Below, piece after piece: positions 895-27,093 of a stretch of 64,000 nt of DNA (the first letter of the stretch is position 1; every line of letters starts with the position of its first letter). The translations under genes were made by a program, and so were the position numbers. Source of the stretch: Bugula neritina. Taxonomy: Eukaryota > Animalia > Bryozoa. Below the pieces are notes generated by a model. It did not search any database. It was not told where the DNA came from and worked only from the letters and a program-made list of their open reading frames with translations. The stretch lies in assembly GCA_964035545.1 (NCBI GenBank), contig OZ037766.1, positions 4,392,722-4,456,721 on the forward strand. The letters run 5' to 3'.

Positions 895-3800
895 TCACAC
901 TTTATATTTGTGCAGTTTATTACATGTCAGTACATAAAGAGCATTGTTAGTAGCAGCCAAGCCATAGATTGTGTCACCACTATCCAATGAAATCACTTGT
1001 TGCATGGACACATGGGCTAGAGACTTGCCAGTCTTTCTGTTCCTCATATCTGTGCCGATTGTTTGCGGCTGTCTGTATATATAGACATGTTTTTCAGAAT
1101 CTGCTATGGCGACATAACTCTGACTTTCTGGACAGGAGATGAAACGTCTGTTCTGCTTTGATGCTTGAATATACCCAAGTGCATTGTGGGTAGCCGTATG
1201 AGTGGGTGGGTCATCAGCACCAGCAGACGGGCTCCAGACTATGCCGTCCACGTCGTGACGCGTACACAACTGTGCTGGTAGATTTAACACTGGAGGTCTA
1301 TTAAACAGCCAGCTGTACCCCGTCATGTTGGTCTACAAGTTAACACACACAATACCACACAATATCATACAACATGGCCTAAGCCAACACCTGGGGATAA
1401 TTTATTCAACTCATAGAGATCTTAAAAATTTTATAAACAACGACTAGAGATGGCCTAAGCCATAACTTGTAGGCAGCATGCTAAAGCTTAGGGTTGTTTA
1501 GATATTCAGCTTTCATGCAAGTCTTTTTCCAAATAAGGTAATGCAAATAGATTTTTTTATTAATGAGACTATTACCAAAAATTAGGTTTGAAGTAAACCT
1601 TAATATTGTTACTAATACTGACAATCTCTTTCACTTATGCAACTATCGATGTTTTTAAAAGAAGTTACATGCTAAATTTTTTTTATAAGTTTATTAAATT
1701 AAAAAATTATCGACGAACAACTAATACAAATAATTACATCTTTTATTAATATTTATTTTATATATATCTTTTGTTATTTATTAATCTTTAGAATCACTTT
1801 GTCTTTGGAAAAGAAGACAACATTGATCAAGTCCGAGAATACCAAATTATGAAATAGAATATTTACTGCTTCAACTGTTTGATAAAACAATATGGTTTTC
1901 TTTGTATTGCTGCGGATATTTGTATGTAAAAACTGTTGATTTTACTATTTTAAACCACCAGACTGAGACACTCTAAGTCCAAATGCTACTATACTGTATA
2001 CTTACTACACCTACTATACTGTATACATATACTTAATATTCCATATATATACTTACTAAAAATACTATACTGTACATATGTATACTTACCACACAAGAGG
2101 GTCTCTTAGACTTGGCTGGGATTTTACACAGGAATGTGGAGTCACCTTCTACGAGGTCGCACTCTTCCAAATCTTGTCCATTCACTGCGGACCTGCCACT
2201 TTGGTCACCGTTTTCCTAAAATATAGGAAGACCTGCAGTCACAGTGATGGTTACAATTCCTTGCTACATGTATATTATGAGTTGTATTTACGATACTTGA
2301 GCATATTCTATAGCTATAAGTTTAATAATCTCTAAGTTTATAACACAGTTCTGCATTTACGATTGAGAACAATGCTGTATATCACAGTGCACAGTACTAA
2401 CAAAAACATATTAAAGTGGCTCAAACCATCAATTAGCATTTGTAGTTTCATATAAAAACATTTAAGCTTGCTTTTCATTCTCCGAAGTCTTAGTTGTCAG
2501 AAAAATAGTTTTCAAATAAAAAACATTTTTGTATTTTTTCATATCTTCTCACATTATTTTTAAAGTAACTCAATAGATTGTTTACTAATGCTAATATATC
2601 TTAACAAATCAGGTATCTTGTTTGATTGACTGTAGATTTTATAAAATTGAAACCATGTTTCGTAATTTCTTTTTAAAACTGAAAACTCCAATAATTTTGG
2701 CAGATTACTAATACACTAACCATAGTATCAGTAGCAAGTACAACACACTAACCATAGTATCAGTAGCAAGTACAACACACTAACCATAGTATCAGTAGTA
2801 CATACAATACACTAACCATAGTATCAGTAGTACATACAATACACTAACCATAGTATCAGTGGTGAGATACGACAGGTTCTCATGTATCCTATCAGCCACA
2901 TCAGAATCGGTAATCATCTCCCCTCGACTATCACCTGACACGAGCTCAGACCACCAGTCGCCAGCTGATTTGGTCAAATACACTTCCAGTCTGAGAATGA
3001 AGATACAACACTGGTATGTCAACAGAGAATGTCAACACTCACAAATAATAATGATACTGTGTGTGTATAATAATTCCCATATTGTATGGTCAACATTAGA
3101 ATTGATGTATAACAATTATATAAAAGGATCCTATAAAAAGGTTTACATAAAAAGATTAGTTGTGCAAATGCAACTAGAGGTTAGGTGTAAACTTGACAAG
3201 AGTGGCAAAGAAATTCTCAGGAAATCTAGAAAAATGTAAAAAAAGTTAACACTGCTTAGTACAAACTGTAGGGTCAATTGTTTGTTGTTCAAATTACAAC
3301 CAGAAAGACAACTCCAAAAAGCACAACAAACAGCCATACAATTATTTACACCTAGCTAGTACAACATATCTGATCAATAGACTACCTCCTGTTTCCATCA
3401 GCTAGTGTCCACGTACACTCAGAGGCTGTTATAGGGCTGAATAAATCACCACATAAGAGTTGTCTTCCTTGTACAGAAACGGCAATAGAATTCCTTGAGA
3501 AAATTATGTTCACTTCCTTTTTATCCAAGTTCTGAAAGCCTTGCAAATTGAAGGTGACTGTGATATCCTCGTCAGTTTGTAGCCACACATAAGCTGGTCC
3601 ACTGTCGTTACCTTGCGATCAATATATATACATGTTATTAGTTGTTACAAAACGTAGAAAAACTTATAATATGTAACCAAAATTCATAGTATCACCAGAG
3701 TTGCATTGTCTGTATGACATGATGTAGAACATTGAAAATAAAAATGTGTGCAGAATATTTTGAGAAAGAAACATCGATTAAAAACATCTAAAAAGGTTAG

Positions 3801-6473
3801 TTATCAGTAAAAGCAAACTCAAATTTCAAATCTATAGGTTTGGGTACAGTATCTCAATGAGCACCAACATTCCACTAAACACAGTACAAACAACATTCTT
3901 TAAACTTCGTTAACTCAGTCAATTGTAAGAAATTACGGATCCTATACCTGATGATTGCTTTAAAGACACGTCACCGCCAGCAAGGCTGTCGTCTGCTGCA
4001 GAGGAGAAACTGTAAGTTTGGCTCGCTACAAATAGAGAGTCTGGAGCGCCCAGGGAGACATATTCTACGTTGTATGCAGGAAATTCTTCGGACGACTCCT
4101 CTCTCCACAAACCTTCACTTCCTGTAAGGTCAACTAATACATAACTTACTGTTTATATGTACTATTCACTAATATGTAACTTACTGTTTATATGTACTAT
4201 TCACTAATACACTACTTACTGGTTATTGTACTATTCACTAATACACTACTTACTGGTTATATGTACTACTCACTAACACACAACTTACTGGTTATGTGTA
4301 GGTACTACAATTGTCACTTACCGCACACAAGTGATATTCTAGTGATCACAGTGCGGAACCCTTTCTTCTCCCCCTCATTTTCCACAATATGTCCAGTAAC
4401 TAGGGCTATCCTCTTTTCAGAGTCCTCATTGCACTCAATACTCAGAGAATCATAAATACTGAAACCGTATTCTTTGGTCTCGCTGTGTAACACCTTCATA
4501 AATAAAATTACTTATTTATTTAAAATACTTTAGCAGATAACGAATAAATCTCATTAAGCTAATTATCAACTTGATAAAAGAAAAGAGTTAACTGATATTA
4601 TTTTTTATTTCAATCAATTAAGTAAATTGAAATTTAATTAATAATAAATTAAATCAATTAAATTGATAAAAAATAAATATCATAGGCCTAATGCTGTCAA
4701 GTAAACCTGCTATAGTAGGCATCAACCACTTGGAGCAGTATTACTTTTGTAGAGTAAAAAACTCCCATATGTAATGCCTACTGCTCATCATTTCTTATTA
4801 CAGCATCAGTAAACTTACACTCCATGTTTGCTGAAGGTTTCTGTCTCCAGTTTCCAGGATATAGAAGCCGCCACAACCGTCACATAGCAAAGCCAGAGAT
4901 TCAGAAGGGAAAGTTAAGGTAGGATTATATAGGTCAATCTCAACTCCTTCTCTAGTGATGGAGGAAGGTAAGTTGTCGCACAAACTGAACACATGGGCAG
5001 CACCTTTCAAACTATTTTCCTACAGGGTAAAAAAAACTTGAATTTGATTTAAAAACTAAAAACATGAAACTTAAAAACATGGAATTAGGGTGAAAGCCAG
5101 ATGAAACTACAACATAGTTTATTTCTTGCGGCAGGTTATTGATTTGCAGCATTCATACTTTCTACAAATCAATGTTATACGCAAAGCTCCTTAGGTAAAA
5201 TAATTTGAATTCAAGCAAATTTCTGACAATATTAAATTACTAATAATAAAGTCAACAGTAACTACCACAATAATGGTTTTAAATGCCATTGAATAGCCAT
5301 CAAACCTCTCTAATAGCATTGAAACCACAGTTCATTGCTAAAGATTTGATTTAACAGCTAACGGTCTAGTTTAAATTAGATAAAATAAACATAAGCTCAC
5401 AATTATTATTGAATTAAGTAACATTTTATTCTTACCTCAGGCAGATTACAGACTGAATATACTTTCATATCTTTGGATATAAAGTAGAGAATGTTTGAGT
5501 TCCATCTCTCTTGTATTAGATGGTTATGGGAGGCAAACAATTTGACATGTTGGAGAGAATATTGATGGGAAGGGATGTTAACTATTAGTAGCTCTACAAC
5601 AAAATATTCAATCACGTCATAAACATGAATAGCAAGCAATACAAATGAGGCAGGCACTACACAGTAATGCATTGAAAAGTCCAAATGCCACTTACAACAA
5701 AAATACAAGACTTTAATGTTGCCTGTGAAAGTACTAGTGTAAACTGTACCACCACCTGTGCGTGCCAAAAAGAATAATATTCACTAAGAGTCATTGTCAT
5801 CATGCAATATCTGAAAATCAAAATTGCACAACCAACTGCTGAATTTTGAGCTAGTAATTAGAGATTTACATTAAAGTGAATTAACAATCACTTGGACTTA
5901 GCAAGAGAGTTGGTTAGCGGAGTTGAAATATTAATTTTCTGATTGATCATTTAAAAATGATTTAAAATTAATGATTTATAAATTCAAATCCGAATCGTAA
6001 GCTTAGAAATAGAATTTAACATCAACTAAAACAATAAATATTAGCTTATTAGCTATAACAATTGGAGTCTCTATTATAATATTAATTATAAATATACATC
6101 ACACTTACCACAAGTAAGCTTAATACTTATTTTATACTAATACACTTACAGTAATAGTATTACTATTACTAAAAGTTATTGAAGTATTCAAGTAATACAA
6201 ATACTAATAGTAATACTTACAGCTATGGCCTATGAGTTATGACTATGAGTTAAACTTAATGTTATAGCTTAACTTTAAGTTATTAGTTATACTGATACTC
6301 ATACCGAGTATAAGTATTAACACTACCTTATTCAATGGTAACTTATTTTTATTTTATTTACCTTCTCGCAATGGTATATTATAACCAGCAATTTTATCTA
6401 GTGACAATCTGTAACCTTCAAAATCACTGTCAAGTAACTGCCTGTTTATTTTTAAATCAATCCATTTTTCCAT
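895..6473 (-). CDS. NUDCD1: NudC domain-containing protein 1; 9 exons (6473-6362, 5593-5436, 5019-4819, 4493-4322, 4121-3948, 3611-3386, 2990-2849, 2215-2090, 1332-895), 582 aa
   Basis: Starts MEKWIDLKINRQLLDSDFEGYRLSLD (NUDCD1 N-terminus LLDxxFEGYxLSL). CS/p23 domain YVWLQTDEDITVTF...CTWTL, then QDLEECD, and C-terminal LCTRHDVDGIVW...ALGYIQASKQNRRF. All phases consistent. Confidence 0.93.
1985..2088. repeat. Degenerate minisatellite (TACTATACTGTAYAY-like) in NUDCD1 intron
   Basis: About three copies of tactatactgta(t/c)a next to the exon donor. Confidence 0.55.
2713..2860. repeat. 32-bp tandem repeat (5 copies) containing the NUDCD1 exon-7 3' end and donor
   Basis: acactaaccatagtatcagt starts at 2713, 2745, 2777, 2809, 2841. 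Confidence 0.9.
4140..4305. repeat. ~32-bp degenerate tandem repeat in NUDCD1 intron
   Basis: Unit about tactattcactaatacactacttactggttatatg, about 5 copies. Confidence 0.85.
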
Positions 6474-7672
6474 GTTTTCAATTGACTATTTTTGTTTGTT
6501 ATTCGCCTATGTTGAATTAGTTAAATTTAATACTTATAGTTGTCGTACACCCCAACTTGCCATTAAGTTTAACTATGAGTAATTGGGTGACGGTTATAAT
6601 AAATAATTAATATACCAAAGACGAATCATTGAATGAGTGTAGACACAGTATCATGCCAAATTGATGTAACGCAGCAACAGCACTTCTATTGCGAATGCAG
6701 AGCACCAGTGCAACAAATTACTGAATAATAAGAAGACAACTCGTTACAAATCTGATGTACTTAATAGATGGATATATTAATACCAACTGAAATTTCATTG
6801 TTAAAAAGATTTTAAAGCATTATTACAATTTACAATGCAGTAAATCAGACTAGCACAACTGTTATGCAGTAAATCAGGCTAGGCAACCGTTATGAGGCAA
6901 AGAGATGATTAATTGGTTGCTAGTTCATATCAAACTGGCAAATTAAATAATGCCTGACAGTAGATTTCAAATATATACACAAAGAACTTAAAAGTACATT
7001 GAAAAGATATTGTGACTTCAAAATTTTAAAGATAAGACAATATATTTGAAACAAAAATATGTTATAAATAAATTAATCCTAAAGTTTTCAGGCTCAAAGT
7101 CATCAACTTAAAATATATATTCAGCAATAAATAAAAATTCACTCTCTAAATTCTAAAATCTAACTGCCAAAATTTATTAGCTAGAGGACGGAATTAAAAA
7201 TGTTACAGAAATACAATAATAGCTGGTTGAATGGGCTTACTAACTAAAAAATAGGCATAGAAGGCATCAATTTACCACTAATATTTTCCAAGTATAAGTG
7301 TGCCACCAAAAACCCAACTACTTGAATATATTAAAAAATGCACATCAAATTTTAATTTAAGGATAAGTTTTAACTTTTCAAACTTACAAGTGGCCTCGTT
7401 TACAGCTATAGTCCTTAATTATATTATCACTTTTGGTGTTTTATTTCAAATCTAATGCCTAATAAATGTAAATACCACTTCAATAACTACAGTAAAATGT
7501 TCAAATACGAATTCTACATAAGTTCACAATTACAGCTGAAATTCTCACAGCTTATAGAAAAATAAGGCCTTCGGCAGTCATGATTGACCTAAGTTTACTT
7601 GCCTACAAAATGTCTAAATCCATGTATGTAAGCAATATAATAGCAGCTGCTATGAAAGTATAAATATGCTGA

Positions 7673-10600
7673 CTAGGAGCTCGTAGTGGGCGAGACTTGT
7701 GTCTCTGTGAACTCTATGAGGTCTAGAGGTAAGGCCTGGTTGGTGTCGTATATGACATACTCTTTAAGGGAGGAATTGTCTTCCCCTGTAACAGCTAATC
7801 TTCCTGGACACTGTAACATTAAAAAGTATAATAATGACATATATAAGCTAATCAAAAGTTAGAGCTATTTAAATTCCAAGCCACATAATGACTTGTAGAT
7901 ATATATTCATATATAGAAATATATAAATAGCCTATATATATAGATATATACAAATTAAATTTCGGCACCGTTTTATTGTTATCTAATTTAAACATTATGT
8001 CTTATTAGATTTATCTTCTCTCTGCTGACTTTTAACAAATTCTGACAAAGAAAGAAACATAATAGCAGGATACATAAAAGGTAAACTGCAAAGACATGTT
8101 AGAACTCCAAAGTATAATACTACATGGACAGAAAGGTGTGTCCTATGCTTACCAATACAGAGCAGAAGCCTTTGTCACTTGAACTACGCTGTCTATCTTT
8201 AGAGAGAAGCCTCTGATACCGTCCCACAATTACTTCAGCCACTAGCACCTTGTTAGGCTACAACAAGCACGTATACGATTTGTAGAGCTCACTCTAACAT
8301 TGTGAGTGACAATAGCTACTGGGGTATACTGTATAGCAGGCTCATAAACATCTACCAATCAGATGTCAATAATTATAAATATTCTAAAAATTAGTATACT
8401 TTTACTTACTTTGCACTAAAAGCAGAAGAATTTAATAACATTGGGTTCAACAACTTTAATCATGCAAATATTGAGTAAAATAAGATTAGGAAAAGTGATT
8501 TATTTTACTAATTTATTTCTAGGTCACCCTAGTAATTGACTAATTGACTAATCGATATATTAATTAATTTATCAGATAATCTATTTAAATATATAATAAA
8601 AAACTGGAAGTAAAATAGTTTTGCTAAGGCATTGCAATAAACAAACATTTACCTTCACATTAAACTTACCACGGAGAAGTGCACAGCCGTGGAAGCAAAA
8701 GAGGAGAAATACAGGCCTTTTCCATAATCTCCTTCTGTCAAATCTAATAGAACACAAATAGATCGGTTACCCTTAGATACACTATAGCAATTTAACATTC
8801 TACAGTCTATTATTAGATAGTTGTACCTATGTTTCGTATACATTCAGTTTTTACAGGCTTTCTTATCATTAAAAGTTGACTATTTATATGTATTATACTG
8901 TAGTTTGTAATATTTAACTGTCTCTACATAAACCACAACAGGGATATATAGCTAAATTAAAAAGAAGGCAGCTAATTTTCATACAAGGCATAACAATAAA
9001 CCAAATAAATTAGCTTTTCAATCTTATTTTCAACTACCCACCCATTTCAGAAAAACCATTCTTCAGAATATCCTTCAGCCTTTCCGGGTTCCGTTGTGAA
9101 CCGCAGTAATACAGTTTCATGACTGTGGAGTTGTCTTTCCTAGACTCCTTGTACAACTTGGCATACCTGTCCACTACTGCCTGGCTGAGAAGTGCCTGAA
9201 TAAAACAGTGAATCTTTTAAACTGATTCAGGAGATTAACATTTAAAATGAAATACATCTATTTTTATATAATACTGAGAAAATGGTCAAAAAGTAAATGA
9301 AGAGCTATCAACTTTTCAGAAAAATAAAACTAGTATTTTAAATGCATTATCTGTTGAAGTGGGATCAGCACAGTTGGACATTTGCCAAGAATCATGTCAG
9401 AATAAAATCAATAAGCAGTGAGACTCAGTCATGGAGGTGACTGAGTAGTCATAACTTAGTATCTCTCAATTCATCAGAGAAAGAGTACAAAACGCTGATT
9501 AGTGTTGTGTATGGAGACTAATGGAGAGATAATTCAGTTATACTGGGGATCACTAAAAGCAGCACAACACTGAGGGTCATTGAGTGCAATGTTACTGTCA
9601 CAACTCGATACTATTTACCACTGCACTCAGTGACCACCAACTTTGTGCTGCTTCAAGTGACTTCCGCTATACTGATGCATAATACTAACCTTAGATACAG
9701 TTGTTACAGTGTAGTTTCTGTGCATCTTTGAGTCCTGCCTCATGCTATTTTTAAAGTCTTCACAAATTCTGTGAAACTCCGCAATATCCTTACCGTGATC
9801 ATACACCTCTACTGCCGACTGCGGTACCACTATGTACCTCTTCAACTCTGCATCACAATAAGACACTAGTTTACAGTATACCAAATATAATACTACATTC
9901 AGTATAGCAGATTGGGGTTCCTTATGAAATTTTTACTTTAATTCTTCTAACCTTAGTGTTCTGAAGACCATATTATAATGTGTAAAGACACATGACACAC
10001 AGTAACCCTACATTTTTCCATATTATAATTTGTTAAATATTGACAAAGTTCAACTAGAATCTAATTTTTCTTGTCACTTCTATTCCTGGCTTACAGTATA
10101 TTATAATATTACATAATATATTATAAGTATAATGTCTAAGATTTATATTCACCACGTATACCTGATACTACTAGTCATCTTTAGATACTCAGCTTTCAAC
10201 TAGTTATGCTCTAACTAGGAGATCTATTTCACTATGCAACTAAAAACTCACACAAGTTTATAGTCACTATCCCTGTGAGAAACCCCTGGTGGAAGGGTTT
10301 TTGTTAAAGCGGGCCAAGGATTTATTTAAATGAGGCACAAGAGCAATTGTGACTGGATGCTCTTCCTAACATCACCAATGGCCTTTTTCCGGGCTGGTAC
10401 CCATGACTTCGTGATTACTAGGCAAATGCTCTAACCCCTAGACCACGGCTGCTCCCTTTCACTATACAACTAAGCACAATATTAACTGTATGAATAGGTT
10501 CACTTGTCTATACTGACTATTGCCTATAGACAGACAGAATTTCAAGAAAAAACTTACTCCAGCAAAGCATTTAGAAGAAAAAGAATAAAGGTATTTAGTT

Positions 10601-13600
10601 GATGAGTAAATATGCAACTGACATCAGCATCATGAAAAACTTTGCCGATCAAGAAATGAACACAACTAAAGCAAAGGGATGGTGAAAGCCAGGATAGAAA
10701 AACACTAACAGAAAATGTTAAAAAGTACAACAGCTATTAAAAGTTAATGAGTTTATAAATTACTAATACACCTCAAGCACTGCACTTGAGTTAACAACAG
10801 TCTTTGGTCTGTAGCTAATCTAATCCATATCACTGATCAATATACGTCATGCATCTCAGAATTTCACTATTCAACTATGATTATATATATGCATATGTAT
10901 AACCAAATAGATAGATATTCAAACAGAAATAACTTAGCAATTGAGCAGAAAGTAAAACACTATCTAAAGAACAAGTTTGTAAATAAAATAAAATAAATTG
11001 GGGATGTTGAAAGTAGCTAGTAAGCTAGTACCACAACACTTGATAACAAAGCTCAACTACCTGAATGCTTGAAACAGTCTAAAACTAACAACAGTTTGAA
11101 TGTTACTGAAAATAATAGCTACACAGATAGAGCACCAGGTTTATGTCATCTGCCTGGTTATGTCTTTAAAGACAATAAAATATATGTTTGATGGTCTAAT
11201 AAATGAAGAATTGACTAGTCAAATGCTAATTTCTGATATTCCAATTTCACTGAAATATACTTAGAGTAGAGTTGAATCTCTCCAGAAATGAGGGCATAAA
11301 TAAACCAGCTTAGTTTAAGCTTTGAAATTGTTTCACAGCATGCATTTAAAGCAGGCCTACAGGCTGACACTGCAAAGTAGCATCTTCTAGCAAGTTTCCT
11401 CTTAAATATTGTATTACTAATGCTAAATAATAACACAGCAACTAAACTATGACACCCCTAATTGCCTTGGCCATCTCAGCATTTTTTAGGATAAGAATAT
11501 GTGTACAAGTGAGCTGCATGCTTCGTCAAAGCAGAATTTTAATCCAAACTAGTTGTACCTTGATCTGAGCTAGATTGAAGAGGTGCAGATTTAGCAGTAG
11601 GGAAAATATTCGGGCCATCTCCGTCAGTATCAGCTTGGAAGTTTGACAGTATCTGATATCTGCTTAGTAAAGTGTCAGATGATGTGAATGTGTCACTGTA
11701 TGCTTCCCCACAACCTGCAAGAACATTTCATGTTAATAAAGTGTCAGATGATGTGAATGTGTCACTGTACACTTTTCAGCAACCTGTAAGAACATGTCAT
11801 GTTATTAAAGGGAATGCTTGCATGGTAGTGTCATAAGTGAATGTGTCATCAGACAACTCACAGCTATCTATAAGCATAATCGGTAAGCACACCTGTTCAG
11901 CAGTGTCATAAATCTGATAATAAAAACAAGTCAACAAAACTAAGCACAGTGTATTAACAAGCTATATATAAGCATTTCAGCTGATCTTTGATATGTGATA
12001 TTTGTAACATAGTTACTTTGCACTCACCTCCATCTGTCTGTCTGTCTGTCTGCAGAGCCAGTAGCTCTATTTTATGCATCATCAGTTGGTTCTCAGTCTT
12101 AAGCTTCTCAGTTTCTAATTGGCTGACCTTAGCCTGCAAATCTCTGATTACATCATCCTGTGAACTCACCTGCAAGAGATGCCATGCTTGCTATAGTCTA
12201 CAGATGTACTACGGATGTACTACGGATATGCTATCCGAAAAACACAACCAGTTTATAATGTTACGGAGCTACCTGCTGAACTAACTTATGAAGTTAAGCA
12301 ACTGATTATGTCTATGAGAAAATTAATTGTAGCTTATAGAAATGCAGATGTTATTCTAGGTTAGCAATTATGTAAGAGGAGTAAAGTAGTCTAGACTTCT
12401 AGTAGAGCTTCTAAGACCTGTAGATAAATTGACTTTATTAGGTGGTGTAATTAATACATGGGCTGTTTCACGGCTTGAAGTTATTGATTTATACTCAACA
12501 AGTATAACACTATTTATCTACAAAGTAAAACTAGCTCCATGAAATTTAACAATGTAATAAATTAAGAAGTCATCTTGAATGATAAAAAGTGTACCCTAGT
12601 AAAAGCTAATTGTTCCATTCTAGAATGACAACTCCAACTTTTGCAAATTTAATATTAATTACTTGAATGAGTGAATGAGTCATTTAACATAAGATGGAAT
12701 TTTTTTAGAAACGCCAAAATTTGTAGCAAGATTGTTAAGAGCTGTTAGACAAACACACCTCTGAAGCAAACCCTGTAAGAATGTATTGTCAACTCACCAT
12801 CGACCTGAGCCGAATCATCTCTGATTTCATTCTCTCTATAATGGTCACCTGAGACTGGTACGCCTCCAAGCTGCTGTTCTTCCTGCAAGGAAATGAAGCA
12901 TTTGTTATGTTTATCATTTTATGTAATCAATAGTAAAACAAATTTATTTTAATTTACAATGTAGTTTAACTTATAACTATGGCCATCAGCGTGTTTGTTT
13001 ACATTCCTACATATTTTAGGAGTTATCTTATCACGTGAATTAAAAGTTCACCGCAGCACAATTAAGGAAGGATAATCATAAGTTTGAAAGAGGTCAAAAG
13101 GTTTTGTTTTATTTAAATACAATTTTCTATTATAAAAAACATCATAATGTTTATGGAAACAATTGACTATCCAAAATATCAGAAAATGCCTCGATATGCC
13201 AAAGTAATAATGTAAGTTGTACTGCTAAAACCATCATTACCATTTCCGTAAGTCTTTCTCAAGTGACAGAAGATCTAGGTCACTGACCTCATTGGTAACT
13301 GATTCACCTGTATAGGGCGGAATGTAGGTAAGGAGGAGACAATTTGTAAACTGCTCTGCTATTTCTCTGTAACAGATTAGATGAACTTTGTTCCCGTTCC
13401 CGTTATACTATAACAACTATGACAAATATATTACATGATGCGCTATTAGTTGTAGTGAGCGCAATGGAGTTGTGCCCACATTGCACATTCATTACTTAGT
13501 AGTTACTCAGTAATTACTCCGCCGTTAATTATTAATTAGTATGTAGCTACTTGATAGTTAGTCTGTAGCTACTTGATAATTATTTGTAATATACTCATAT

Positions 13601-16600
13601 AATACAATATTTTGTTTGATATTAAAGATGTGTAAGTGTATAATAAACCTAATACTGTCAACACCAGTACATTCTAATAACATAACATAATTAGTAATGA
13701 TGAATGTTGGACACATTGGTCACCCTTTGTATGGTTTATGAATGGCTAACAGGAAATCCTATATATTACATACTGCAAGCATTTTATATGTATGGTATAC
13801 ATGTTTATCATGAGATATATTGGGCTCACTTCCAACGACTGTTGAGGAGTAAGTCATCCGAGAATCCATATCTGGAAAAGAACGGAGCAGCTTCGGTCTC
13901 AGCGTGTACCACCACCGCCTCGTGCCGCCCAGAGATATTTACATCTTTCACTTTCTATAAATATTAAGAAATTTGTGTAACAGCAGCTACAGTACCACAA
14001 GCAAGTAGAAGGGATAAACATAATGCTGTACAGTTTAATATGTATACTATAAGTGCGAATGGCAGTGAATTAATTTATTCCACCCAGCTGTCAACTTTGT
14101 GAGTAAAAAAGACAACTCCTTTCATATTATGGGATGAAAATATACAGGATTGAAACCATCTGGAAGTCATCCAAAAACTAGTTGAAAACCAGAAACAAAA
14201 CATTTGGGTAAAAATCTGCATGAGACTAAACTTTTAAATGCAGAGTATAATAATAGAAGTGTATGTATTCCATGCATATACATGTATGCATATTACATGT
14301 TGTATAACCGCAGAGTAGAACATCCTAGTAGAAATCACTCACTTCTAAGAGATATTTTCCTAACCCAAGACGTCTGAACCTCTTCCTTATAGTAAGTAAT
14401 GTTAAATGGGTGATCTTTTCGCCAGTTTTTCTAAAGTACAACACAAAGTTGATACATTTTATACTTAAAATGTATTACCGTATAAATAGCCAACTAAACA
14501 CCAAATAGCAATATATGTGCTATACTACAGGGGTAGAAGGAAGGAGTTAACTACTACGCTTGCTGACCGTATAGCACATGACAGAGAGTATATTAATATG
14601 GATATTTTTATTTCCATTATATTTATTGTAGCATGAGAAACCACTTTTCAACATATCATGATAATTTAATAATTACGATAATAAAATTATCACTTTGATA
14701 AACTATAGATTGTGTGTTTTATAAGTGCCAACAAATTACATTATTCAGAATTGAGGAGTTGTCTTCTACTAGTGAATTGGAATATTAGGAGTTGTTTTAT
14801 TATGGCTAATAATATTAGTGGGAGTATTTACATAGATATTTGAGAAGAAATCAATGTTGTGACATTTAAGAAATACAATTGCCATTGACGAAAGTAATCT
14901 GTAAATTACTAATTTATTTTATGACGATATGTGTTACAGACGGAAGAGTATACAGCCTTTTAGAGAGGCTGATTGAACTAAGCCAATTCAAGTAGATAAA
15001 ATCAATTACTTTCCAATCAAAATACAATATGCATGCATTTTTCAATTCGGTGCCTGTTTATTTGCTCTACTTAGTCTAATACGGAAAGAGTAGGTGGAAA
15101 AATAAGTCTCATTGAAAAAGTCTATGACGAAAAACTGCAGAATTTATAAAACAACAAGCTCAAGCCTCAACAGGCACCTGAAAAATTAATGTTGAGATCG
15201 GTAAAATGTTTAGGCTAGGGCCACACGGCGCAGATTTACCACATGCGGGTCCAAATAATTGAAAATCTGTTGCGGGAACGACCTGCCACACACAATGCAT
15301 TGGTTGTGGGTGGAGAAATTTTTTAGCTAATTATCTTGGCATTTAAATCTACTGCTTGCCTACAGGTGTTTGTTTTTAAATCTACGTCATCGGCAAAGCC
15401 ACTTCAGATATTATAAAAGCGGAAATGCAAACTATATGAAACTGTTTTAGGTTAGTTCGATAAAAATTGAAAATTAAAAAAGTGTGCTCCCTAATGGAAA
15501 CTAGCCAATTAGATCATGCCCGCTCGAGCTTTCTGCACTCTCTGCTCGGCATGTTATCCGCATACAACAGCTCATTTTTGGGCTAGACAGGTTTCTCGCC
15601 CAAGTAATCCGAGCCGTGTGGCCCTACCCTAAGTATACTTGGCACATAATGTACAGACACACACATATTGAAAGTATTTACACAAGTAATTCCTTACATA
15701 TACTTCCTGTCAAAGGTGCACGCTGCTATAACTCTGTTCTCAGGTCCAACATGGTTGAGACTAAATGGACCTGAATGGCTCAAGCGCGACTTGCGACGTG
15801 CTGTAGCTTGCTGGAGGTAAGTGTTTATACCTTTAGAATAATCGTCATCGTCGTCGTCATCACTACAAGTAAACGTTAGACAACTGTTGAGAAAGATAAG
15901 GAGAGCACAACTTCTCACCTAAAGAAGTGCTTACAGGGAGGTGAAACTAATGCCTATTTGGAGAATAGAAAACTACAATAATAGTACACTTATATTTGTT
16001 ATATAAGGTATTTATACTCCTGCAATAAATGTGCTAGCTATATGTTATTGTGTTTAATATTTTTATTTTAAATGTACAGAAAAAGTAAACAACTCCACGC
16101 AATACATAACTTGGCTACTAATTAGCGTTTGCATTGACAGCAATAGTGTAACACTTGCAGACTGAAAGGGTATTGTTTTGCTATAAGAGAAGAGATCCCT
16201 GGTGAATTACTTTTGCTAAAGTAAGCTTACGCGTGCAATGGGCATGTGTAATGTTTTAGGTATATATTCTAAAGATTGCTTGAAGACAGCAAATAGAGTC
16301 ATTAAACGGCAGCAAGTATAGTCAAGGGACATATTTCCTGTGTAGTCTGGCACTCTTTGTTCCCTGAGGTACTAAATGTTATCTACTCAGACCGGATTTA
16401 TCTGTTAATATCCATTAAACTCCCAACAGCAAGGCAATGACACAACCTGCTAAAACGTTCAGCTTAAATGTCAAGAGACAAAAGCTTCCGTTAAAAAATC
16501 AATTACTTACAGTTGTAGAAGTGGTAGAAAAAATATTATAGTGTTAATTTCTAATACAGTGTAAATTCTAGACGTGCATAGAGCTGTGTTATAGTGTTAA

Positions 16601-19330
16601 CATATATGGCATACACTGCATATGCTACCAGCTTACAGTTGAGTTTATACAGCTAATGAGGCATTAGTCTTATAGTGCAAACAGAATACAGTGTATAGCA
16701 AATATGTCTGAATTATCCCACAATATTGGCTGAATAAACAGCGTGCATTGATAATTGGCATATACTATTTTATTAGAAACAGCATGAGTGTGTTATTTAT
16801 AAAAGTAGGATATACTAATGATGAAGATATATAAATCCATAATAATAATTGGATATAAGCGGGTAAATTGTAAGAGTAGTCTACTCAACGTGGGAAAGTC
16901 TAACTTGTTTTATTCCTTTTTGGTAAAATAATAAGTGTTAAAGTAGGATACTAAGTATTTTACATGCTAATAATGGTACACTAAACTCTAGTATGGAAGG
17001 AGAGTTACAATAAATTAGCCAGCCTTACAACATGACTATAATACTAGACATGCACCTTCAACCACCATGAAAACTTTACACTGGAAATTTTATAAACGAA
17101 GCCAAAGGTTGTAAATGCATGAAAGATTGCATTGGTTGATAGTCACCATCTCTAGAAGAACCCCTGATGGAAAAATTTGTTAAATCAGGCTAAAGACTTG
17201 CGTTCTACTCTTGCAAAGGAGCAATTATGATTGGATGCCTTTCCTAACATCACCAATGGCCTTTACTGGAATTCGAACCCCTGATCTTGTGTTTACTAAG
17301 CCAGTGCTCAAAACAATTAGACCATTAGACCACTGCCGCTCCCTTTTTTCAACAGAAGACTAGTGCAGTGTAACTAAACTATCACTGCGTCCCCATGCTT
17401 TGAGTTACGGATTTTTCATTCAATGCATGGGAACAGCGTCAACCGAATGAAAGCACAACCCTAGGTTAACGAAACCGCAAATTCCTCCACATGAGCATCC
17501 CAAACGGATCCATTTAAAGTATGGACATGTGGTATATGAGTAGATAGATTCGTCATTGCAATACCACTCATAGCCTACCTATCATCTTCCTCTTCAGTCT
17601 CTGAGTCACTGTAGCAAGGCGCAAACGTGGAGGGTGGGGGATCAGGAGCCCGATATTTGTCTTCTCCTGATAGGTGCACTCTCATGTCTGAGATATCAAT
17701 GTGACTATACTTCAGATCTACTTTACACAGACTGTGGTCATCTCTTCTCTTCTCAAACTCCAGAAAAACATCTGAGTATAAACATAAATTATTAGAGCGC
17801 ACAAGATATGTAAAATAATTTTGCTCCCACTGGGATTCGAACCGGAGACCTCCGGCTTGCAAGCAAGTGTGCTAACCATTACACCACGGGGACCACTGGG
17901 TAAACTCAACACTACAGATATAACAGCAGCATTTCTATGCAAAACATAAAATGTGACTAGATGTTATAAATGTATACATATTACAAAAACATTAATTCTT
18001 TTTCGAAAATGTTTAAAATTATACATAAAATTGAATTAAAATAAAAATTAAGATCCACACTAAACAGGCAGTTAAATAACATTATAGTGATCTTTTGAGT
18101 TCAAATCTATATTCTATCTGCTACATGATTTTTGTTATGCACAGCATTCATTGAAAATGTTATCAATAATTGTTAAAAGTAAATTCAATAATTTAGTCCT
18201 AAATTAAAATACTCAAATAAAAAAGTCAACATAGCTCTCATTTGGATCACCAGCAGACAGCTCACAAACTTTGTTAATGGTTTGAAAACTATAATTTAAA
18301 GATGTGACAGTTGACTATTTTACCTTTAACATCTCTGACTAGAATGATAGTTTTAGCCCATTTACTACAGACAGTAGAGTAGATGACATCTGGAGTGAGT
18401 TCAGTCAGACTCGTGTCATAAAGACCAACAACTGCATGAAGCAAGTCCCTGTTGCTTATCTACAGTAGCACACATGCAGTTAGACTGTGAGTAAAAGAGT
18501 GAGTGATGACTGGTTACTAGTCAATAGTGTTTCTGCTACTAGACAAAGCACTAACAGGAAATTCTAATAAAACTAAAGCTATCAAATAAATGTAACAAAA
18601 AATGTCAATTAACAAACAATATTTATATTTTTCTACATTTCTGTATATTGGGATATTTTCACCATAATAATATTTTAGCGAATTTGAATTTAAACTAAAC
18701 TTGAAAGATATAACTTCAACAACCAAATGTTGCAAATAAAAAACAAAACATTAACTGAAAGCAAAAATAATCATCTGGGACCTAGGTTAAAACTTTATTT
18801 ATAATTTCCTTTATATGCATAACATAACTATAGATGCAATTATAATGCCTTGTAAGTTGTTGAACTTAAACTCAAGTTTTTTTACACCAAAAGGTTATAA
18901 AGAAGTATTATGATAATGTAAGATATTACAATGTATTTTATATTCTTTTCATAAGGGGTCGTCTCCCTTTGTTACCTCAGTCTGATTTTGTTAGTTAGAA
19001 ATAGGCTAATATATAATTTTGCTGCAAAACAAAAGATAACCAAACGTTGAATAGCCTACTCACCCCAGAAACAACTGGATTGCTATCATTGCCGTGCTTT
19101 TCTTGCTGCATTAATCTGTAGAAATCTACCATTATCGGTGTCACACTTAAGTTGGTGTTGTTAGCTGTCAATGTTTCTAAATTTCTTTTAGGTTCTAATT
19201 TAAATCTGTTCATTGTAATGCTAGAAGCAAATTCTTTAATATTGTCTTCTTTAATTCCAACATTGACATCAGCCATTGGAGGTATATCATCATTTTCCGT
19301 TTCCATTTTTAATGAATCTACTTTTTTCAT
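7673..19330 (-). CDS. Uncharacterised GCN5-like GNAT acetyltransferase + coiled coil + PARP-like ADP-ribosyltransferase-fold protein; 15 exons (19330-19064, 18459-18324, 17771-17579, 15862-15698, 14430-14343, 13954-13830, 13366-13241, 12882-12798, 12169-12028, 11714-11559, 9865-9690, 9195-9042, 8743-8670, 8257-8153, 7810-7673), ~709 aa
   Basis: All 14 GT-AG introns join in frame with no stop. GNAT: LYDTSLTELTPDVIYSTVCSKWAKTIILVRD ... RVIAACTF ... ITHLTLLTIRKRFRRLGLGKYLL (motif A RxxGxG) ... VVHAETEAAPFFSRYGFS (motif B). Coiled coil: IIERMKSEMIRLRSMVSSQDDVIRDLQAKVSQLETEKLKTENQL. ART: KLYYCGS...ILKNGF...GDYGKGLYFS...VLVAEVIVG...EYVIYDTNQALPLDLIEF. Confidence 0.85.
10244..10456 (-). mobile_element. 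tRNA-derived SINE (family A) with 17-bp target-site duplication
   Basis: Minus strand starts GGGAGCAGCCGTGGTCTAGGGGTTAGAGC (tRNA head/A-box) and has core TTGGTGATGTTAGGAAGAGCATCCAG. Flanked by tttcactatRcaactaa at 10227-10243 and 10457-10473. Second copy at 17136-17343. Confidence 0.8.
11668..11810. repeat. 69-bp tandem duplication spanning the acceptor of exon 10 of the GNAT-ART gene
   Basis: taaagtgtcagatgatgtgaatgtgtcactgta at 11668 and 11737. Confidence 0.9.
15213..15629. mobile_element. MITE, PIF/Harbinger (Tourist)-like
   Basis: Terminal inverted repeats GGCTAGGGCCACACGG.../...CCGTGTGGCCCTACCC flanked by TTA/TAA; ~417 bp, non-coding. Confidence 0.72.
17136..17343 (-). mobile_element. 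tRNA-derived SINE (family A), second copy
   Basis: Aligns to 10256-10456 (tcctaacatcaccaatggccttt identical); B-box GGTTCGAATTCC on the minus strand. Confidence 0.78.
17823..17913 (-). mobile_element. tRNA-derived repeat (family B) / degenerate tRNA
   Basis: A-box TGGTGTAATGGT and B-box GGTTCGAATCC, but T-stem and anticodon stem are broken; homologous copy at 25908-26005. Confidence 0.65.
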
Positions 19331-22146: not shown

Positions 22147-23870
22147 ATGGCTTGTCCTTTGGCTACTGAGAAAATCTGGTTTGATAGGGCAAGAGTTGAG
22201 GAAGCTGAGAGTAACTTCTATGCTCGAAAGTATAGTGGGGATAGTGCAGTCGCTCATGCTGTAAGACATATTTCTTTTTGTCAATAAGCTTGTCCGTCAT
22301 CTTGTAAACATAGCTAGTTGTGTTGATAGTGTTGCTGCACTTTTTGGTTGCCTTTTTTATCTACTGCCTCACACCTGTGGCTTGTCTTTTTTCCAGACTG
22401 CCGCAATTCTTGCTGAAATTAAAAACATAAAGGATCACATCCGGAATGCTCTAGTGAGTATATTCCACAGTGTTGTGCTGTTATATTTAGTTGCATGATA
22501 GACTCTCGTAGTTTCATCACTGTGATCTCAATCTGGGCAATCCAAAGCTCCTCTGTGTTTAATGAGCATATACTTTAGAGCTCACTCCATCTGCTGTCAT
22601 CAACTCCACACTCTCTTGTCTCTCATCTAATCTTTTGCTTCTGTAACAGTCAAAAACATCTCACACTATCAGAACCTGCAACCAGCTAATGTGCACTTGT
22701 ATACACACAGGGTGATTTATTCAACACAGAAGAAGAAGAAATCGACATGCAGCGGTTAGAAAAGCTCGAAAATGAAAACAATGCACTCCGTAAACTGATA
22801 GACTCTCTGGAGGCCAGGGTGGCAGCTCTAGAGTGTGGACCAGCAGCCCCTGCTGCCAAGGTAGTCACATGATACTGTAGTATACAAGCTAGTCACGTGA
22901 TAATATAGTAAACGTGGAGACGAAGTAGTCACGTGATACTATTATATAAAGCCGTGTGTTTGTAGCAAGAGACTAAACCAGCCCCAGCACCGGCAGCTAA
23001 AGAAGAGGATGAGGACAGCGACATTGATCTCTTCGGTTCAGATGACGAAGATGACGCCGAGGCAGAGAGGATCAGGCAAGAGAGGCTAGATGCTTATGCT
23101 GCCAAGAAGTCTAAGAAGCCTGGAGTCATCGCCAAAAGTAACATTATTTTAGATGTAAGTGTTGATTATTCCTGCCCTTTTCACTCCTGAGGGGGAAGTA
23201 AATACCCGGCCTCCAAATATAGGTAGGGTTGAACAGTAAAAAATATATCAGTAATAAAGGCTAGATGTTTCATCTACCTTCACTTAATTTGGGGCACTCA
23301 ATTAATAATTCCAGTGACCAGTCTCCTGTGTTTTGTCTTCAATATGAACCCCTTGTTTGGGCTGCAGATAGAATGCTATTTCAGGTTAAACCATGGGATG
23401 ATGAAACAGATCTGGCAGAGATGGAAAAAATGGTGCGTAGCGTCACTATGGACGGACTTCTGTGGGGAACAGCCAAACTGGTACCAGTTGGTTATGGTAT
23501 TAAAAAGTTACAGATCACCTGCGTAGTTGAAGACGATAAAGTTGGCACAGATGACCTTGAGGAGCACATTCTAGGCTTCGAAGATTTTGTAAGTTTTGCA
23601 GGAGTTGTCTCTCATTGCGCAGTGTACTACCACTTAAAGCTGAAAAACAATTATTGCAGCATGCACAAGTTGAATTCGTTTGATTCCCTCTAAAATGGTT
23701 TTGTCAAATAATTTCCAATCCTAAACTGATAGACTTGAAAACCTGTGTTGTTATTTTTCTATTACTGCATGTTATTACTGCCTATTTGTCCTCTAAACGC
23801 CTTTTTAAATGAATTCCCTGCATATTTTCAGGTACAAAGTATGGATGTGGTGGCATTCAACAAAATTTAA
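22147..23870 (+). CDS. EEF1D: Elongation factor 1-delta; exons 22147-22260, 22397-22453, 22711-22860, 22966-23154, 23385-23588, 23832-23870; 250 aa
   Basis: ACCACCATGG Kozak. [13 protein letters not shown] (delta-specific EKIWFD), leucine zipper [37 protein letters not shown], and GEF domain [17 protein letters not shown]...[12 protein letters not shown]. Confidence 0.96.
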
Positions 23871-26005: not shown

Positions 26006-26940
26006 AAATTTAAAATCGGACTTGCCTAAATTTGGACTTTGGAGTCAAAAGTTTTTCTTTCATATTCAGTTTACCAGCCAACAAATAGCTAGTAACTAAC
26101 ACAGGCAAGTTAAGCAGCTGCAAATTTTTGCTTCGTTGACAATTTAGCTGCTTATTCCAGGAAATTTAATTAATTAAATATGCAAAAGTGTGATAAAATA
26201 GTGAGTCAACACTTGGTTTCTATCTAACATTTTGTTTGCTTTGGGGCTGATTGTTATCTGCACGGAATATATTGGCATACATTACATAGAGAGGTTTATA
26301 CTATAGAAGTACGTCTGTTTGTGTATCACTAGATAAAGTGATGCAGGACTCACAGCATGTATTGACGGATATCAATAAGCAGCAGGGAGTTGGCATCAAA
26401 CATCGACAGAAGTTGACAGTCATGCAGGTTCGTAGATAATATTGTAATGCAAGTAGGTCTTGCAAATACTTGACCTCATCATTGGATCATTTTAAAAGGT
26501 AGTATAACTAGTTTTATATGCATATATACAATACTTTATTAAAATTGAGTGACAGCTATACAAAATTTATTATCGTAATAAAACCGTGTCAAACCTTTTT
26601 CAGGGGAATTGCAATTAATTTTCTGATATAATTTATTTAAATTGAGTTTCGTAATTAGCTGCAGTTTTGTAGGATAGCTATGTGCAGTGCACACTTTGAT
26701 TATTGTAGCAGGGCTAATTTTGAAAAATAATATTTTCTAAATTTCTAATAATCATTGGCCTGCTGGTAAGGTCAATGCTTCACAATTAGGTCAAGCCCAT
26801 AGATCTTCAGTTGTCTTTATAAATTTTGTTATGAAAATAATCTCTCGGGCTATATTTCTTGTTCATAATGCAGTTTTTCTCAATTTTTTTATTACATGCA
26901 GCACCTACCTCATGCTTCATTAAAATACTGTGGATCTGTG

Positions 26941-27043
<103 letters not shown>

Positions 27044-27093
27044 CAGAGCAGAGTTTATAACATATAGAAAGAACTATAACATTTGATTAAAAC

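Follow-up and report, generated by a model that had tools for sequence, protein, structure and literature searches.

Two groups of described proteins come closest to the gene reported here. The first comprises GCN5 and PCAF (KAT2A/KAT2B), with which it shares the whole histone acetyltransferase (HAT) fold, including the N-terminal b1-a1-a2-b2 elements and the GCN5-specific C-terminal strand, as well as an acetyl-CoA loop of the form R/Q-x-x-G-x-G. The second comprises PARPs of the H-Y-E ARTD type (Pfam PF00644) such as tankyrase, PARP10 and PARP1, in which NAD+ is contacted at its ribose by the His and held at its nicotinamide by a Ser; to our knowledge, the human PARPs without the NAD+-binding His (PARP9 and PARP13) have no intrinsic activity. 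The PARP fold without this His also occurs in the pseudo-PARPs PARP13/ZAP, plant RCD1/SRO and TASOR, none of which is fused to an acetyltransferase. Within a 64,000-nucleotide stretch of the Bugula neritina genome (contig OZ037766.1, positions 4,392,722 to 4,456,721; hereafter the window), a minus-strand gene at 19330-7673 joins both folds in one polypeptide. We consider it likely that this is a single-copy gene of 14 exons (possibly 15) encoding a GCN5-type HAT together with a PARP-fold domain of a non-canonical kind, which forms a module coupled to the HAT. The order of the domains is a HAT fold split after strand b2 by an acidic insert, a helical spacer, a variable linker and a C-terminal PARP fold.

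The gene lies in AT-rich animal DNA (GC about 0.33 in the window), and its exons were called from open stop-to-stop pieces and listed splice sites, with the boundaries set by comparison with orthologues. Its 14 minus-strand exons encode 656 or 657 codons plus a stop. Every exon piece is open (14/14), all 13 introns have a GT donor and a pyrimidine-tract AG acceptor, and the reading phases are compatible across all the exon joins, where the split codons read D, S, I, K, W, V and D. The start ATG at 19330 is directly preceded by an in-frame TGA, the stop codon ends at 7673, and an AATAAA lies downstream of it at 7445. A family hidden Markov model (HMM), built as a profile of 20 full-length orthologues (alignment A2, 685 positions), was searched against all 3619 stop-to-stop open pieces on both strands of the whole window; it matches exactly these 14 pieces, collinearly and over HMM positions 23-683 of 685, the E-values of the single pieces range from 7e-24 to 0.011, and the next best match in the window has E 5.7. 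The same collinearity of exons is apparent when the orthologues are compared by tblastn (about 40-77% identity per exon). In the 216-Mb genome each half occurs once, and searches of it found no paralogue of either. With 14 pieces in order, in phase and bounded by GT-AG sites, and a single set of family HMM matches in the window, the original prediction that this is one gene is upheld, and as judged from sequence the interval 19330-7673 (-) is one real fusion gene.

That the locus might instead be a decaying, non-functional copy of the family is scarcely credible. Some family-conserved residues do differ in the window (for example, a Cys stands for the Asp of the 'DSII' motif in exon 13), and exon 13 scores a low 11.8 bits against the family HMM; however, none of the 14 exons is interrupted, the splice sites, start and stop are intact, all the key motif residues agree with the family, and a pseudogene would here have to be the sole copy in the genome.

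The family was reached by a chain of searches, in which the word-indexed protein search covered sequences between 0.55 and 1.75 times as long as the query (218-695 amino acids). When the PARP exon at 9043-9180 was compared with representative sequences, it returned exon-sized fragments carrying LY[YF]CG[ST]..P.R...ILKNGF from many species, among them a 152-amino-acid metatranscriptome fragment (P0009) with a Pfam PARP score of 34.1 bits; two other matches of the representative search, a bacterial surface-repeat protein (P0001) and a low-complexity sequence (P0002), were set aside as spurious. P0009 led to P0019 (264 amino acids) and to a Candidula protein, and P0019 led to P0022 and to a 397-amino-acid model from Elysia marginata (P0024) that has a GNAT domain and the C-terminal part of the PARP domain. 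An alignment of these proteins (A1) then retrieved the full-length orthologues: about 25 proteins of 570-695 amino acids with precomputed Pfam GNAT and PARP domains, from about 20 molluscs (gastropods, bivalves and Lottia), the annelid Paralvinella, the nemertean Tubulanus and Ciona intestinalis. Look-alikes in the ESM Atlas form two GNAT+PARP clusters, in which Rotifera and Chordata are the commonest phyla. The conservation of the fusion in other invertebrates, which the original prediction had proposed as a check, is therefore observed. Several of the matches sit at the 695-amino-acid upper limit of the searched lengths and are labelled 'isoform X2'; as X2 or X3 isoforms are listed for several species, the linker or the PARP part may commonly be spliced in alternative ways.

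In six of seven orthologues analyzed by hmmscan, both domains exceed the curated cut-offs of Pfam (26.7 bits for PF00644; the GNAT superfamily profiles are PF13673, PF00583 and PF13508). The PARP scores include 40.1 (P0046), 39.0 (P0045), 35.3 (P0041) and 34.5 bits (P0049), and the GNAT scores 43.7 (P0040), 40.0 (P0041) and 27.1 bits (P0045). The seventh, Tubulanus isoform X2 (P0047), has a GNAT score of 48.0 bits and a truncated PARP domain that stays under the cut-off at 22.0 bits; this isoform ends shortly after the PARP signature (residues about 680-695), without the Glu-bearing strands. Orthologues in RefSeq and UniProt, such as those of Ciona intestinalis (LOC100181199), Crassostrea virginica (LOC111120953), Aplysia (LOC101854343) and Lottia (LOTGIDRAFT_233022), have the same architecture and motifs, are about 40-50% identical to the window exons and collinear with them, and bear no functional name; members of the family are called 'uncharacterized protein LOC...' or 'N-acetyltransferase domain-containing protein'. 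In terms of sequence, nothing sets the window gene apart from the rest of the family, whose single-copy representative it is in its genome. No human, fly or nematode orthologue is among the matches of the search over 218-695 amino acids, which could not exclude one, and it is probably for this reason that the family went unnoticed. Neither a full-text literature search nor one fungal PARP preprint yielded a description of a GNAT-PARP fusion in animals, and in the parts of the PARP-family surveys reached by term look-up many partner domains are named with no mention of an acetyltransferase. The view that the architecture is uncharacterized thus agrees with the searchable literature, and the family represents a variant, so far undescribed, of PARPs and of GCN5 alike.

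The relationship of the N-terminal half to GCN5 is seen in both sequence and fold. A profile of the orthologues' N-half (A4), searched against PDB sequences, has its best match in Tetrahymena GCN5 (tGCN5; 1.4e-5), followed by GNA1, human KAT2A, NAA30 and PCAF, and the alignment to GCN5 spans the core, the GCN5-specific C-terminal strand and, weakly, the N-terminal helices too. When an AlphaFold2 (AF2) model of an orthologue N-half is compared with solved structures by Foldseek, the human GCN5 HAT, tGCN5, yeast GCN5 and PCAF match best across the entire domain (5trm and 1cm0 being the best fold matches), with target-normalized TM-scores of 0.68-0.73 to GCN5/PCAF; the margins of GCN5 over GNA1 and NAA50 are modest. 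Because the profile alignment and Foldseek both point to GCN5/PCAF, the pairings of motifs with the GCN5/PCAF HAT domain that had been made from the letters alone prove right. Searches of solved structures with single window exons gave chance matches only.

The HAT fold is distributed over exons 1-7. Exon 1 (19064-19330; donor gtgagt) contains the start ATG, a variable N-terminus and the start of the fold (strand PIMVDFYRL; family HMM 22.1 bits, positions 23-84). It is followed by exon 2 (18324-18459), with helices a1-a2 and strand b2 (SNRDLLHAVVGLYD...KTIILVRD), which is the best conserved exon (family HMM 81.9 bits, E 7e-24; 65-77% identity with orthologues by tblastn) and is single copy in the genome. 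Exon 3 (17579-17771; 15.3 bits, positions 161-194), which is in phase and bounded by GT-AG sites, encodes a helix and the acidic disordered insert inside the fold (...FAPCYSDSETEEEDD), where the orthologue model has a low predicted local distance difference test score (pLDDT). Exon 4 (15698-15862; 57.0 bits) encodes poly-Asp, the conserved DYSKGINTYL helix and strand b3 (ENRVIAACTFDRKY), the last of which aligns with 'KVIGGICF' of GCN5. The acidic insert of exons 3-4, roughly 100 amino acids long, lies between the KTIILVRD (b2) and RVIAACTF strands. A short splice from 18324 to 15731, which would make b2 and b3 contiguous as in GCN5, was considered and rejected, because the acidic insert and the DYSKGINT helix are conserved in the orthologues. 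Strand b4 (EKITHLTL) and the acetyl-CoA loop RRLGLG are encoded by exon 5 (14343-14430; 35.9 bits), which aligns with tGCN5 and on its own matches Pfam Acetyltransf_10/1/7 at 15-16.5 bits, and b5-a4 (AVVVHAETEAAPFFSRYGFSDD) by exon 6 (13830-13954; 58.4 bits), which on its own matches Acetyltransf_10 at 13.9 bits, at profile positions collinear with those of exon 5. Exon 7 (13241-13366; 42.0 bits) supplies the GCN5-type C-terminal strand (AEQFTNCLLLTYIPP), aligned with the 'TLMECYIHPY' segment of GCN5, and the start of the helical spacer.

The RRLGLG loop, recognized as an acetyl-CoA loop in the original prediction, has the Q/R-x-x-G-x-G/A form of an acetyl-CoA pyrophosphate loop, and in the orthologues its R is kept in 19 of 20 and its last G in 20 of 20. 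The position of the GCN5 general-base Glu in strand b4 is occupied by His in 19 of the 20 orthologues and by Gln in the other; in the window it is also His (EKITHLTL). The HAT half would be expected to bind acetyl-CoA and probably to acetylate a protein substrate with this His as the base. The family differs from GCN5/PCAF in this Glu-to-His change, in the acidic insert after b2, and in lacking PCAF_N and a bromodomain, neither of which gave a Pfam match in the scanned orthologues. A separate, true KAT2 (GCN5/PCAF) gene is present on another contig (C4:16430083-16431459, +), with five exons that match PCAF_N above cut-off; the GNAT-PARP protein therefore belongs to an extra GCN5-like family and is not the GCN5 of the species.

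Between the HAT fold and the variable linker there is a proline-free to proline-poor helical spacer of roughly 75 amino acids, continued from exon 7 by exon 8 (12798-12882; SLEAYQSQVTIIERMKSEMIRLRSM; family HMM 27.2 bits) and exon 9 (12028-12169; 14.0 bits, positions 395-441). It had been described as a coiled coil, which is plausible: the orthologue spacers are stretches of 58-75 amino acids with few or no Pro/Gly, and all 20 have the same best heptad register (p 0.004-0.33), whereas the window exons taken singly are insignificant in a crude heptad test (p 0.64 for exon 8 and 0.16 for exon 9). Oligomerization through the spacer is plausible, and in the mechanism that we propose it would probably be how the protein assembles. 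The variable linker of the family is also the location of a candidate cassette exon at 11559-11714 (-), which would encode 52 amino acids in phase behind the acceptor ttcttgcag. This is the 15th exon of the original prediction of 15 exons and about 709 amino acids; the 14 exons encoding 656 or 657 amino acids have the support of homology, and the 15th has no similarity to the orthologue family, with a score of 17.3 bits that lies under the shuffle mean of 18.6. A 69-nucleotide tandem duplication (87% identical) is located at 11664-11801 in this long intron and overlaps the acceptor and the 5' end of the candidate exon.

The C-terminal half has the PARP fold with an altered NAD+ pocket. A profile of the orthologues' C-half (A3) matches tankyrase-1 (1.9e-7), then PARP10, PARP1, PARP4 and PARP3. 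The AF2 model of an orthologue domain is confident (pLDDT 88.6) and is matched by Foldseek to tankyrase, PARP1, PARP3, PARP4 and PARP10 (E about 1e-10, TM about 0.7). In VIA-align the model has Z-scores of 18.9 with TNKS2, 17.4 with Arabidopsis RCD1 (root-mean-square deviation 2.6 Å), 16.9 with PARP10, 16.7 with PARP13 and 13.6 with TASOR; the range for tankyrase, PARP10 and PARP1 is 15.7-18.9, so that the pseudo-PARPs rank similarly to these enzymes. None of the other domains known from PARPs (helical regulatory domain, WGR, macro, WWE, SAM or ankyrin) accompanies the fold in this family, in which the partner is GNAT.

Five exons encode this half. Exon 10 (9690-9865; family HMM 28.3 bits, positions 490-543) holds the end of the linker and the first PARP-fold helix and strand (VYDHGKDIAEFHRICEDFKNSM...YTVTTVSK). 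In exon 11 (9042-9195; 45.8 bits) the strand KLYYCGS, with a Cys at the position of the catalytic His, is followed by the ILKNGF helix; this exon is single copy in the genome, and its motif LY[YF]CG[ST] is the one seen in the exon-sized fragments of many species. The PARP signature YGKGLYFSSFASTAVHF, with the Tyr kept, Ser replaced by Ala and Tyr by Phe, is encoded by exon 12 (8670-8743; 26.1 bits), whose donor is at 8670 or alternatively at 8673; alone, this exon matches Pfam PARP at 15.4 bits and aligns with GAGIYFAENSSKSNQY of tankyrase. The central PARP strands (KVLVAEVIVGRY...GFCSVL) are in exon 13 (8153-8257; positions 611-645), the boundaries of which are identical to those in the locus of the snail Candidula, and exon 14 (7673-7810; 21.3 bits, positions 645-683) contains PGRL, the catalytic-Glu strand (LKEYVIYD), the final strand and the stop, its Glu aligning with that of tankyrase AEYVIY.

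In the residue alignment with tankyrase, the family Cys falls on the catalytic His, 'GLYF' on 'GIYF' and 'QEYVVF' on 'AEYVIY'; the signature Tyr and the catalytic Glu lie in equivalent strands. Across the 20 orthologues the NAD+-binding His position is Cys in 17, Ala in two and Ser in one, and never His; the Gly next to it is kept in 19, and the signature Tyr is Tyr in 18 and His in two. The equivalent of the nicotinamide-anchoring Ser (PARP1 S904) is Ala in all 20, that of the stacking Tyr (PARP1 Y907) is Phe in 19 and Tyr in one, and the catalytic Glu is Glu in 19 of 19. The window agrees with these columns at LYYCGS, YGKGLYFSSFASTAVHF (...ASTAVHF) and KEYVIYD. The triad is therefore Cys-Tyr-Glu in place of the His-Tyr-Glu of H-Y-E ARTD enzymes, and Ala and Phe stand where the active enzymes have the Ser and the stacking Tyr. 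The three ARTD signature strands recognized in the original prediction are thus present, and its alignment of LYYCGS with LWHGS is correct, but the catalytic His within them is replaced by Cys. The loss of the His is shared with the pseudo-PARPs; in contrast to these, the family retains both its signature Tyr and its catalytic Glu, and no segment of its protein is better conserved than the signature, where the mean major-residue frequency is 0.75 vs 0.71 in the HAT core (20 orthologues).

Several observations weigh against the reading of the locus as a single gene with a non-canonical PARP module. Taken singly, the window exons fall below the Pfam cut-offs, which are reached via the orthologues; the domain calls in the window rest on exon-by-exon matches and on orthologues tied to it by the family HMM. 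The AF2 model of the N-half is of moderate confidence (pLDDT 69), with a disordered acidic insert. A Glu kept in 19 of 19 orthologues and a very highly conserved signature are not typical of an inactive PARP and would suit one that is still active. The Tubulanus isoform truncates the PARP domain, the annotation of Candidula unifasciata divides its locus (L002; CAJHNH020001193.1, 1-17470) into a 418-amino-acid upstream model and a 173-amino-acid PARP model, and a mollusc-like metatranscriptome contig of another species (L001) has the spacer and the PARP part only.

The last two of these would also be expected if there were two adjacent genes here, namely a HAT and spacer gene ending near 12028 and a PARP-like gene with its own promoter near 9865, as would the 2.1-kb gap between the halves. 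We nevertheless regard two genes as very improbable. The donor that closes exon 9 is strong (gtgagt) and in phase 1; exon 10 begins in the matching phase and has no start codon at its 5' end. Full-length single open reading frames (ORFs) are known from about 25 species, and one transcript-type contig from Logan (L003; 2140 nucleotides) also has one, of 667 amino acids, which contains both domains and spans HMM positions 30-683; this contig represents a spliced mRNA, because the genomic loci have at least 13 introns. In Candidula, the exons all lie on one strand in the order of the family profile, and it is the spacer exon that closes the upstream model, so that the division into two models looks like a gene-model artefact. 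In L001, positions 1-280 are stop-rich sequence that ends in ...ttttgtag, a textbook acceptor, just ahead of the spacer exon; the upstream part is most simply a retained intron, or alternatively there is an internal start in that species. The evidence thus remains in favor of a single fusion gene in the window.

The activity of the PARP-fold half is the point on which our reading departs furthest from the original prediction of a bifunctional writer that uses acetyl-CoA and NAD+, a claim at odds with the substitution of the PARP His and Ser and of the HAT Glu. Canonical NAD+-dependent PARP activity appears improbable, because the residues that hold the NAD+ ribose (His) and the nicotinamide (Ser) are replaced, and PARP9 and PARP13, without the His, lack activity of their own. 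An active (mono-)ADP-ribosyltransferase with a Cys-Tyr-Glu site, working beside an active HAT and consuming both NAD+ and acetyl-CoA, is likewise unlikely. It is kept in contention by the retained Glu and the tight conservation: the Glu is maintained in 19/19 orthologues, the Gly that follows the His position in 19/20 and the signature Tyr in 18/20, the signature is conserved above all other segments, and the fold cannot be told by rank from active tankyrase or PARP10. On the other side, the NAD+-binding His is absent in 20 of 20 and the Cys itself is unfixed (C/A/S), the nicotinamide-anchoring Ser is uniformly Ala, human PARP9 and PARP13, which also lack the His, show no intrinsic activity, and the model is equally close to the pseudo-PARPs RCD1 and PARP13. 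It is a doubtful proposition, too, that the site is a working catalytic or sensing Cys-Tyr-Glu/Ala pocket, with an unusual use of NAD+ or with CoA, acetyl-CoA or (O-acetyl-)ADP-ribose as its ligand. If true, one conserved animal protein would directly couple acetyl-CoA with ADP-ribose/NAD+ chemistry, acting as a dual writer or else as a sensor of two metabolites, by a mechanism missing from the human, fly and nematode models.

We therefore suggest, as the reading that we favor, that the PARP-fold half of this HAT fusion is probably a selectively maintained module for binding a ligand or partner, or else an atypical catalytic one, and that it would target or regulate the acetyltransferase. In molluscs, annelids, nemerteans, rotifers and tunicates alike, one polypeptide has retained a GCN5-type HAT together with a PARP fold, and the NAD+ pocket has been rebuilt and then conserved more closely than the remaining sequence, which points to a real ligand or chemistry. 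The family offers a possible physical link of acetylation with ADP-ribosylation signaling, in animals that are open to testing (Ciona and oysters).

Elsewhere in the window, a short interspersed repeat occurs in two copies (10335-10434 and 17213-17312; 76% identical over 100 nucleotides) in two different introns of the gene, and may be a short interspersed nuclear element (SINE). A CS domain (Pfam PF04969, 47.6 bits) is encoded at 3382-3588 (-) by the downstream neighbor, which lies on the same strand, has more open pieces over 895-5010 (-) and may resemble NUDCD1. Upstream, on the opposite strand, there is an exon of the elongation factor 1-beta/delta type (Pfam EF1_GNE, 101.6 bits) at 23265-23693 (+), and a long microsatellite of the dinucleotide type, translated as IYIYIY..., extends over 26859-27086 (+).

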